From contig OZ218962.1 of NCBI GenBank assembly GCA_965112735.1, positions 1,488,001 to 1,552,000 on the forward strand: a stretch of 64,000 nucleotides of DNA. Reading direction: 5' to 3'. Below, in pieces: positions 39,347 to 42,724 of this stretch. The first letter of the stretch is position 1, and the number at the start of each line of letters is the position of its first letter. The notes under the pieces are model-generated. The model saw only the letters and a program-made list of their open reading frames with translations. It searched no databases and was not told the DNA's origin. Both the position numbers and the translations under genes were made by a program. Source of the stretch: Phaeosaccion multiseriatum. Taxonomy: Eukaryota > Protista > Ochrophyta, other classes.

Positions 39347-42300
39347 ATGAGGCCGTCTACCGCTGCAGCGGCGCTTGTGGTGCTCCTCGCAGGCACGAAA
39401 ACACATGGCTTCGGGTTGGGCGGTGTTTCGCTACACGCGCAGCAGCTGCAGGGAAGATGCGCTGGATCTGGGACGACGAGGAGATGCAGCAGCACCAGGA
39501 TTGCCTCCTCAGGAGCAGCAGGAGCAGCAGGAGCAGCAGGTACAGGCAGGATCGGGTTCAGATGCAGGAGTGTGGCGTGATTGCAGCACGTATTGTGGCG
39601 GGGAAGGCCTGGCTGCCATTTGGAGGCTGGAAGTGGGTCGTTGAGGGCGGCGTCCCCACCAGCCGCTGAGGCTGCGGCACGCGGCTGCGGCACTGCAGCT
39701 CTTGTCTCTTCGCAAAGTCTTAGAATGTAACCCATCCTCTTGTCTGTTGTAATGGGCAGGGCGTATGTCGATGAAGACTGCCGCCTCTGCAGAGCCTGAT
39801 TACATCATCATCGGAGGAGGGACCGCTGGCTGTGTGCTGGCCAATCGCCTTACGGAGGATAAAACTAAGAATGTGGTGGTGCTTGAGGCGGGAGGGGCCA
39901 AGTACAACGACAAGAAAATCAAGGTACGGCACAAGAAGAAAATGTACACGTACGCGTGCTGTTCTCTCCCTCATCGTTACTCCCTCTGTCTCCAGGTTCC
40001 GGTGGGTATTCTACGCCTGTTCAAGAGCGCATTCGACTGGGACTTTACCAGCCAAAACGAGAAGAGTGTCTCAACATCATCGGGCGGCATCTATCTTGGA
40101 CGGGGCAAGGTGAGGCAGGCAGGCTTGAGGGACGATGCTGTGCCAGGCATCAATTTGAAGCCCAGAAGCACTTGTGGGCGACAGCTTAGGGATACTCCTT
40201 TTACTCCCTGCTGCACACAACGTCCTACGTCCCCCCTCCCCTGTAGGTGCTTGGAGGTAGCAGCTGCATGAACGTGATGCTCTACCACAGAGGGCAGGAG
40301 TCGGACTATGACTCTTGGGGGGTGGAGGGGTGGGAGGGGAAGAACTTGTTGCAGTACTTTACCAAAGCAGAGGTGAGTAGTGCTGGCGCTGTAACGTAAC
40401 TTCTTCTGGACCAGTTGCTCCAACCAAGTGCATTATACTCTGGCCTACAATGCACTGCAGAACAACAAGGAGCTGGGCAAGCATAAGTACCACGGCAACA
40501 AGGGCCCTATACACGTAGAGAACCCTCGGTATAAGAACAAGCTCACCAAGATGGTAAGGCGAAGAATAGTGAGGCAGGCGAGCGTATCTTTCTGTGTGTC
40601 CTCACTCTCCCCCCCCCCCACACACACCCCTTCAGTTCTTCGATGCTTGCCTGGAGGCGGGCTTCAGCTTCAATGAGGACTTCAACAACTGGGACAGCAG
40701 CCAGGAGGGCTTTGGGAAGTTCCAGGTATGGAAAGGGAGGTTGAGAGGGGTCTGCAAGGGGCGAGGCCTCCGAGTCTGATTGATTTCTGTTCGACAAATG
40801 TCACGAGTGCAGTTGACCCAAAAGGGTGGGCGCCGGTGCTCGGCTGCCTCCAGCTACCTGAAGCAAGCATCAGGGAGGAAGAACCTCAGCACCATCACAG
40901 AGGCGCACACCACCAAGGTGAGGCGCGAACGAAGGCAGATCGTCCGAGGCAGAGAATCCTTTTCCCTAAGCCCGTCCGCACGTCCTCCTGTCTGTGACGT
41001 GAACGCCGCAGCTGGTGATGGAGGGTCCCAAAGTGGTTGGGGTGGAGTACATTTCGGAGGGCGAGAGGAAGGTTGTCAAGGTGGCTCCAGGAGGGGAGGT
41101 GATCCTGGCGGCGGGGGCCATTCAAAGCCCCCAGCTGCTCATGCTCAGCGGTATCGGGCCCAAGGAACACCTGGAGAGCCTCGGCATCCCCGTGGTCAAG
41201 GACCTGCCCGGCGTGGGAGAGAACATGCAGGTGAGGCAGGCTTGGTCAGGGAGAGGGAGAGATAGAGATGTTACGAAGCCAGGGCAGGGAGAGGTGCTCA
41301 CGACCCTCTCCTGTATATGCAGGACCATCCCGCCGTGACTGTGGCGACGAACATCAATAAGGCCATCTCCATCACGGACGATTTGTTCAAAAAGGGCACG
41401 AAGCACCTCAAAGCCACCACCATCGCCAAGTGGTTGCTCGCAGGTGGGTGGGTGGGTGCCGCGCAGAGACTCTCGGTGGCTGTCCTGTGTGCTGATCCGC
41501 TTTCGGCATTCCTTTTGTTGGACCTTACCTGCAGGTCGAGGCCCCATGGCTGCGCCCGGCTGCGAGAACGGGGGATTCTTCAAGACATCTGGAGACAAGA
41601 GCGCCCCTGATGTACAGGTGCGACGTATGTGTGACCCTGGCGTACGTAGAGCGGAGAAGCTGGCCCTCCCTGTCCCATTCTCCTCGCCCTTTCTTGTCTG
41701 TCTTGTGCTAATATACCTGACTTACTGTGTTTGTTCTATTGGAACAGATCCGCTTCGTGCCCGGTCGGGGCGAGACGGCAGACGGAGTAAGTGCATACAC
41801 ACAGGTGAGCTTGAAGGACGGGGTTTGAGGTGGTTTGTACCCACCAGTGGGTTCTCATTCTCTGTCCTTCGTGCATTCGTTCGTTAGATTGGGAATGATG
41901 GGCAGTACAACAGCGGCGTAACATTTCAGGTCATCGCAGCGCGGCCCAAGGCTCGCGGGACGGTAAAGCTCCAGTCAAAGGACCCTTTGGCGAAGCCGCT
42001 CATCCAGACAAACTACTTGGAGGACAGGTGAGAGCTTCGTACACAGCCTTTCCCCCAACGCTTTTAAGAGTCAACGAGGCATAGTTTCTCTGCTCACCTC
42101 CTCGTCTCACTCAAACGCTGCAACACAGTGAGGACGTCGCCACCCTTTCTTCGGGTATTGGCATCGCACGCACCCTTCTCAAGCAAGGCGCCTTCGGGAA
42201 CACAGTAGAGGATGAGGTTTTCCCCGGAAAGGAGGTGAGCGCCAAGTCAGTCGCATAGTATTGTCTTGTTTGATCCTGCAGGCACGTAAGCGGCAAGCTC

Positions 42301-42724
42301 AGCCTCTAACACGTGCTCTTCTGCGCCCTCTGCCCTGTTCAGGTGTCGGATGAGGCGGGGCTGACGGACTACGTCAGGAAGAATGTACATAGCGCAAATG
42401 CAGTGGTTGGTACATGCAAAATGGGAACCGCTTCCGACGCACATGCGGTGAGTATACACTCCGCTCGTGCCTTGCACCTCACTCACTCACTCACTCACTC
42501 ACTCACTGTCTCCTCTCACTCACCTCAACGCGATACTCCCTCGTGAATGTTCCTCCACGCGTACTCCACACACGCAGGTCGTGGACTCTTCGCTGCGCGT
42601 GTTTGGGGTGCCAGGCTTGCGGGTTGTTGATGCGTCCATCATGCCGACCATTCCCGGGGGGCAGACGGGGGCCCCAACTATCATGATTGCGGAGAAGGCG
42701 GCGGCCATGCTAGCTGCGGCATGA
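39347..42724 (+). CDS. FAP: Fatty acid photodecarboxylase (algal GMC-family photoenzyme), plastid-targeted, ~14 exons
   Basis: Signal peptide + HGF. Motifs [44 protein letters not shown] (Cys 41561-41563), QIRFVPG (Arg 41751-41753), [34 protein letters not shown]. Confidence 0.88.

Follow-up and report, generated by a model that had tools for sequence, protein, structure and literature searches.

Fatty acid photodecarboxylases (FAPs) are light-driven flavoenzymes that convert fatty acids to hydrocarbons. Among the closest described systems, the FAPs of Ectocarpus and Nannochloropsis were active when expressed in E. coli and yielded C15-C17 alka(e)nes (bioRxiv 10.1101/2020.06.23.166330), and several brown-algal FAPs were also demonstrated to be active, their activity being lost upon Cys-to-Ser or Arg-to-Ala replacements at the equivalents of C432 and R451 of the Chlorella variabilis enzyme (PMC13521276). 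In the latter study, brown-algal FAPs were recognized by full-length similarity, by the presence of C432 and R451, and by a bipartite presequence. Here, a gene is described at positions 39347-42724 on the + strand of a 64,000-nucleotide stretch of the Phaeosaccion multiseriatum genome, hereafter the window (GenBank assembly GCA_965112735.1, contig OZ218962.1, positions 1,488,001 to 1,552,000), and its sequence makes it very probable that the encoded protein is a plastid-targeted FAP, a flavoprotein of the GMC family. Both the similarity and the C432 and R451 equivalents are found in its product, and the third of these brown-algal features, the presequence, appears to be present as well.

The gene was recovered by joining short GMC-like open stretches of the three forward frames at canonical splice sites, which resulted in 15 exons and a coding sequence (CDS) of 1863 nt for a protein of 620 aa, devoid of internal stops and closed by one terminal stop codon (42722-42724). 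All of the 14 introns, ranging from 72 to 220 nt, are of the GT-AG type. Database searches used single exons or database-returned proteins as queries, while the joined 620-aa model served as the query in local BLAST, in the MAFFT alignment and in the trees. By these means, residues 5 to 619 of the model could be aligned to the Ectocarpus protein (598 aa) with 56% identity (57% over the full length and 57-60% in other comparisons), and the alignment with the Tribonema protein required just 4 gaps across 539 aa. In Pfam searches of the open stretches, exons 4 and 8 matched GMC_oxred_N, exons 12 and 15 matched GMC_oxred_C, and exon 2 gave Rossmann-type flavin adenine dinucleotide (FAD) matches. 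The exons are as follows:

Exon 1, 39347..39539, + strand: start codon, the first in-frame ATG after a stop; signal-peptide-like core at residues 5-14, Phe22 after THG and a transit-peptide-like stretch rich in A/G/S/T/R, the N-terminus aligning with the ASAF-type presequences of relatives; donor GTACAG.
Exon 2, 39760..39923, + strand: FAD-binding GxGxxG ... LEAGG; Rossmann-type FAD/NAD Pfam matches at open-frame residues 16-49.
Exon 3, 39996..40109, + strand: GT-AG bounded, in frame and aligned to FAP homologs.
Exon 4, 40247..40372, + strand: GMC N-domain signature (Pfam GMC_oxred_N, 1.4e-07); Val167 at the position of A171 in the Chlorella variabilis FAP (CvFAP).
Exon 5, 40461..40553, + strand: from the splice model and alignment to FAP relatives.
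Exon 6, 40636..40725, + strand: from the splice model and alignment to FAP relatives.
Exon 7, 40813..40917, + strand: from the splice model and alignment to FAP relatives.
Exon 8, 41012..41230, + strand: end of the GMC N-domain (Pfam GMC_oxred_N, 3.6e-13).
Exon 9, 41323..41443, + strand: from the splice model and alignment to FAP relatives.
Exon 10, 41535..41617, + strand: PGCENG; Cys418 (codon 41561-41563), equivalent of CvFAP C432.
Exon 11, 41748..41804, + strand: Arg438 (41751-41753), equivalent of R451, and Tyr453 (41796-41798), equivalent of Y466; CvFAP chains as the only Protein Data Bank (PDB) matches.
Exon 12, 41888..42027, + strand: SGVTFQ; Gln469 (41927-41929), equivalent of Q486; start of the GMC C-domain (Pfam GMC_oxred_C).
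Exon 13, 42129..42234, + strand: from the splice model and alignment to FAP relatives.
Exon 14, 42343..42447, + strand: HSANA; His553 (42388-42390), equivalent of H572, and Asn556 (42397-42399), equivalent of N575; Ala at the position of the catalytic His of ordinary GMC enzymes.
Exon 15, 42578..42724, + strand: GGQTGAP; Gln601 (42662-42664), equivalent of Q620; stop codon 42722-42724; Pfam GMC_oxred_C, 9.3e-14.

The last intron also contains a short CACT/CTCA microsatellite-like run (42478-42510).

A preliminary description of this locus, made from the letters alone, had listed six motifs and matched them to the residues C432, R451, Y466, Q486 and Q620 of CvFAP. All six motifs were found in the + strand translation of the gene, PGCENG starting at 41555, IRFVPG at 41748, DGVSAY at 41781, SGVTFQ at 41912, HSANA at 42388 and GGQTGAP at 42656, and their pattern is that of one coherent gene and not a product of chance. 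The Q of the fuller string QIRFVPG is the final codon of exon 10, and the CAG that ends the intron reads as Q in the same frame by coincidence. The conservation of the matched residues was verified in a MAFFT alignment of the model with 123 proteins of the FAP set and, as the outgroup, 19 GMC proteins of non-FAP type, in which the relevant columns read as follows:

C432 column: Cys418 in the model; Cys in 123/123 of the FAP set and in 0/19 non-FAP proteins.
R451 column: Arg438 in the model; Arg in 123/123 of the FAP set and in 0/19 non-FAP proteins.
Y466 column: Tyr453 in the model; Tyr in 58, Phe in 32, Leu in 24 and Ile in 7 proteins of the FAP set; segment missing in 18/19 non-FAP proteins.
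Q486 column: Gln469 in the model; Gln in 123/123 of the FAP set and in 0/19 non-FAP proteins.
H572 column: His553 in the model; His in 121/123 of the FAP set and in 0/19 non-FAP proteins.
N575 column: Asn556 in the model; Asn in 122/123 of the FAP set and in 0/19 non-FAP proteins.
Q620 column: Gln601 in the model; Gln in 122/123 of the FAP set and in 0/19 non-FAP proteins.

The position of Y466 varies within the family, and Tyr is therefore a weak criterion of membership. Across the 81 columns conserved in at least 97% of the FAP set, the model deviated at only two, both of them conservative replacements of Leu (once by Val and once by Met), and in the column of CvFAP A171 it carries Val, as do 83 proteins of the FAP set, including those of Ectocarpus and Nannochloropsis, against 31 with Ala. 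It had also been stated that ordinary choline and glucose dehydrogenases show H(P/Q)xGT and GNT instead of the FAP motifs, and the non-FAP set indeed reads YHPVGT and GNTNAP where the model has NAVVGT and GGQTGAP; the usual catalytic His of GMC enzymes is thus replaced, as in FAPs. A divergent FAP-like sequence was encountered in the protein search with exon 15, the 234-aa database fragment P0023, in which the Cys, the Arg, the Gln, H..NA and GGQTGAP are kept and the segment after the Arg differs (LRFIPFVSEPNPYDSL); this fragment may mark a distinct FAP subgroup.

The same residues were located on solved structures by an exon-by-exon search of the PDB, where CvFAP is represented by 5NCC, 6YRU and 7AV4. 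Exon 8 did not discriminate, with FAP and other GMC enzymes level at about 58 bits. The later exons favored CvFAP over the next GMC enzyme, by 28.5 versus 21.7 bits for exon 12, whose Gln fell on Q486, by 31.3 versus 15.6 bits for exon 14, whose HSANA lay over HSSNA and hence H572 and N575, and by 61.9 versus 45.4 bits for exon 15, whose GGQTGAP is an identical heptapeptide in CvFAP with its Gln on Q620. A Parachlorella protein (P0378), used as a bridge, aligned to CvFAP with 820 bits (5NCC) and located C432 in the CvFAP string TSTGCDRGAF. These alignments to the CvFAP chains indicate that the residue numbering of the preliminary description was correct, and to its list H572 and N575 can be added as residues kept in the model.

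An exhaustive protein search with exon 15 returned chiefly exon-sized fragments, most of them from GMC proteins of the GNTNAP type, with 15 of 150 FAP-like and none full-length. Full-length proteins were reached by two word searches, which led from the FAP-like fragment P0073 to a 428-aa Laminaria protein (P0158) and onward, and which together yielded 118 new proteins (P0269-P0386), the majority of them full-length. Among these were the Ectocarpus protein P0270, P0282, named 'fatty acid photodecarboxylase [Nannochloropsis gaditana]', and proteins from Tribonema, Phaeothamnion, Ascophyllum, haptophytes, diatoms and green algae. In one of these searches, a clear gap in score separated FAP-like proteins, at 131 bits or more, from bacterial choline dehydrogenases, at 121 bits or less. 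Close relatives bear the database names 'choline dehydrogenase-like flavoprotein', 'GMC oxidoreductase-domain-containing protein' and 'conserved unknown protein', in agreement with the expectation that automated pipelines would call this gene a choline dehydrogenase.

Phylogenetic analyses placed the gene inside the FAP clade beside assayed FAPs, which upheld its proposed standing as an ochrophyte FAP ortholog. In a FastTree analysis of 143 rows, the FAP set was split from the outgroup at 99, and the model grouped with brown algae, Tribonema and Phaeothamnion in a starred 98 clade, itself nested in a starred 96 clade that included the Nannochloropsis group. IQ-TREE was run on 41 rows, first quickly and then carefully (LG+C20+F+G4 PMSF), and recovered the FAP clade at 100/100 with the model nested well inside, in a 98/95 clade together with brown algae (including Ectocarpus), Phaeothamnion, P0276, Tribonema and P0274. 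The three trees were concordant. Within the 98/95 clade, the sister of the model had a support of just 63/23, and its terminal branch was fairly long in the careful run, at 0.44 changes per column. Identity to the model was 45% for Nannochloropsis, 48% for the CvFAP-like Parachlorella protein and 37-43% for non-FAP GMC proteins. Being flanked in the tree by assayed FAPs, the gene is bracketed by enzymes of demonstrated activity, and on this sequence evidence the FAP tree says that the source alga would stand near brown algae, xanthophytes and phaeothamniophytes.

Some observations weigh against the identification as a FAP or against parts of the model. Exon 10, which bears the Cys, had no PDB match when searched alone, and exon 11, although matched in the PDB solely by CvFAP chains, was matched weakly, with E = 0.57. 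When exon 11 is aligned to CvFAP QVRFVPGMALDPDGVSTY (native positions 449-466, 7AV4 numbering), its Arg coincides with R451 and its Tyr with Y466; given the results for these two exons, the assignments of the Cys and of exon 11 come from the multiple alignment. In addition, the start codon and the junction of exons 1 and 2 were set by sequence logic and by alignment to the N-termini of relatives only, and the outgroup of the trees was narrow, being composed of partial bacterial GMC proteins and one animal-type protein.

The N-terminus of the model is consistent with a bipartite signal-plus-transit presequence of the kind used by secondary plastids of the red lineage. A hydrophobic core at residues 5-14, with a mean Kyte-Doolittle value of up to 3.0, is followed by THG and Phe22, and this Phe aligns with that of SSAF in Ectocarpus and Ascophyllum, of TSAF in P0276 and of ANAF in Nannochloropsis. 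The next approximately 55 residues, up to DYIIIGGG, comprise 12 Ala, 10 Gly, 12 Ser or Thr, 6 basic and just 2 acidic residues.

A working scheme for the enzyme can be modelled on the FAPs of Chlorella, Ectocarpus and Nannochloropsis and on the literature (PMC9729393, PMC13521276), from which its plastid location, FAD binding, light-dependent activity and products are inferred. The mature enzyme would hold FAD in its N-terminal GxGxxG fold, and a free C16-C18 fatty acid would lie in a hydrophobic tunnel with its carboxylate placed by Arg438 (R451) and Asn556 (N575). Blue light would excite the FAD, which would then abstract an electron from the carboxylate; CO2 would be lost, and the resulting alkyl radical would be quenched with the aid of Cys418 (C432), Arg438 and Gln469 (Q486), to give a C(n-1) alkane or alkene as the product.

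The tunnel was also addressed in the preliminary description, according to which its segment differed and the loop after the Tyr was about 4 aa shorter, with a possible shift in chain-length preference. Relative to Chlorella-type FAPs, the difference is real, since the segment from R451 to G462 is unlike theirs and the loop from Y466 to Q486 is 4 residues shorter. It is, however, not special to this gene: the GR....DG layout and the short loop were common to all FAPs inspected from ochrophytes and haptophytes, among them the assayed enzymes of Ectocarpus and Nannochloropsis, and the shorter loop was thereby ruled out as a peculiarity of the gene. A FAP whose RGETA segment and shorter post-Tyr loop make the tunnel different enough to shift chain-length preference would be in keeping with the departure from Chlorella-type FAPs and with the product profiles that vary among brown-algal FAPs (PMC13521276). 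Such a shift is nevertheless unlikely, the same loop length and layout being found in the Ectocarpus and Nannochloropsis enzymes that yield C15-C17 products (bioRxiv 10.1101/2020.06.23.166330); V453, G462 and T484 are unchanged. As a lineage-wide feature, the tunnel segment gives no particular ground for expecting a new chain-length preference, and this part of the earlier proposal is the weaker one. A related suggestion arises from the separate branch of the gene beside brown algae and xanthophytes, namely that its product or substrate profile or its photostability may be unlike those of the enzymes assayed from Ectocarpus, Saccharina and Nannochloropsis. This seems rather improbable, and if true it would make the enzyme a useful addition to the available biocatalysts and one more case for relating tunnel residues to chain length.

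A second alternative accepts that the gene belongs to the FAP clade and supposes that it provides no working photodecarboxylase in this alga, being silent, mis-modelled or now serving some other radical or flavin function after drift. The longish terminal branch of the model could be read in this way, and so could the variation at Y466 across the family, which shows a pocket tolerant of change. On the other side, the frame is intact over 15 exons with canonical splice sites, the near-invariant FAP columns show no more than the two conservative deviations given above, and no other FAP-type copy was found in the genome, a single copy being usual among algae (bioRxiv 10.1101/2020.06.23.166330); this alternative is very unlikely. 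The last alternative, an ordinary GMC oxidoreductase (choline, glucose or alcohol dehydrogenase or oxidase, acting by hydride transfer) that is FAP-like in appearance only, is barely credible, for although the Pfam matches are the generic GMC_oxred_N and GMC_oxred_C, exon 8 fits both kinds of enzyme equally and the top matches of exon 15 were mostly GNTNAP-type fragments, the catalytic His of HPxGT is replaced, the Asn of GNTNAP has become Gln, every FAP-specific residue is present in the model, and the FAP clade that includes the gene is split at 100/100 from the non-FAP set, the choline-dehydrogenase reading being ruled out by residues and tree together.

The assembly comprises 67.1 Mb in 22 contigs, the window lying on contig 13, and no second FAP copy was found in it, since the FAP-specific exon 14 matched this locus alone, which indicates a single FAP copy. 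A GMC C-domain was also seen at three further loci of the genome:

L001, contig 2, 3701639-3704836: GMC C-domain; C-terminal frame HIANTCRMG...PNGHPMAT.
L003, contig 4, 875046-878222: GMC C-domain; C-terminal frame HPACSCRAG...PSVPTQAM.
L004, contig 7, 448314-451415: GMC C-domain; C-terminal frame ADASTFPTSLGINPM.

FAP motifs were absent from the C-terminal frames of these loci, which are accordingly of non-FAP types, and a second FAP copy was ruled out. Long poly-His and poly-Met runs were observed in the frames that flank L003.

Within the window, the following genes and open frames were recorded around the FAP gene:

35702-37090, + strand: open frame of 462 aa containing a long run of Glu residues and, at its C-terminal end, hydrophobic segments; no Pfam matches.
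37665-39107, - strand: multi-exon gene of the CDC50/LEM3 family (P4-ATPase lipid flippase beta subunit), its 3' exon matching Pfam CDC50 at 3.6e-34, upstream of the FAP gene and head to head with it, with approximately 240 bp between the starts.
43282-44257, - strand: IspD gene (2-C-methyl-D-erythritol 4-phosphate cytidylyltransferase of the plastid MEP pathway; Pfam 6.9e-17), downstream of the FAP gene and tail to tail with it.
46027-46896, + strand: open frame with a partial cyclophilin-type peptidyl-prolyl isomerase (PPIase) domain (Pfam 1.7e-05), after which come a stretch rich in Glu, Lys and Gln and a hydrophobic segment at the C-terminus.

There is no reason to regard the CDC50/LEM3, IspD and cyclophilin neighbours as forming a functional cluster with the FAP gene.

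Read as a FAP, the gene would correct the choline-dehydrogenase label likely to be given automatically and would provide this alga with a light-driven hydrocarbon-forming enzyme. A family mined by enzyme engineers for biocatalysts thereby gains one sequence that branches separately beside the brown algae, and the practical value of the gene is modest. Existing knowledge is unchanged: the presence of FAP in nearly all photosynthetic algae, mostly as a single copy, is already on record, and activity has been shown in close relatives. As ochrophyte FAP orthologs are well documented and assayed, the gene is an ordinary additional member of the family and of low general interest.

As regards the closest known systems, the bacterial GMC proteins of the choline-dehydrogenase type (e.g., P0251 and P0211) have the same two Pfam domains as the window protein and are approximately 40% identical to it in the C-terminal two thirds, but retain the His of YHPVGT and GNTNAP, are devoid of the Cys, the Arg and the 16-residue Y466 segment, and stand outside the FAP clade. 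With the Chlorella variabilis FAP the window protein has the GMC fold in common, and C432, R451, Y466, Q486, H572, N575 and Q620 are all matched; green-algal FAPs, in contrast to what the window protein appears to have, present a simple transit peptide, and they differ from it by a Y466-Q486 loop longer by 4 residues, Ala and not Val at position 171, and Thr and not Pro at position 430. The assayed Nannochloropsis gaditana FAP (P0282) is also an ochrophyte protein, with a bipartite presequence, as the window protein probably has too, and with the invariant residues of the latter, and its loop is nearly of the same length, one residue shorter; however, it is only 45% identical and belongs to a separate eustigmatophyte subclade. 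Finally, the Ectocarpus FAP (P0270, 598 aa) and other brown-algal FAPs are of the same length class and share with the window protein, probably, an ASAF-type bipartite presequence and, in addition, the Cys/Arg/Tyr/Gln/His/Asn/Gln set, the short post-Tyr loop and the 98/95 clade, whereas the window protein stands outside the brown-algal subclade, on its own branch beside this and the Tribonema/Phaeothamnion subclade, and reads RGETADG where brown-algal FAPs read RSTTPDG.

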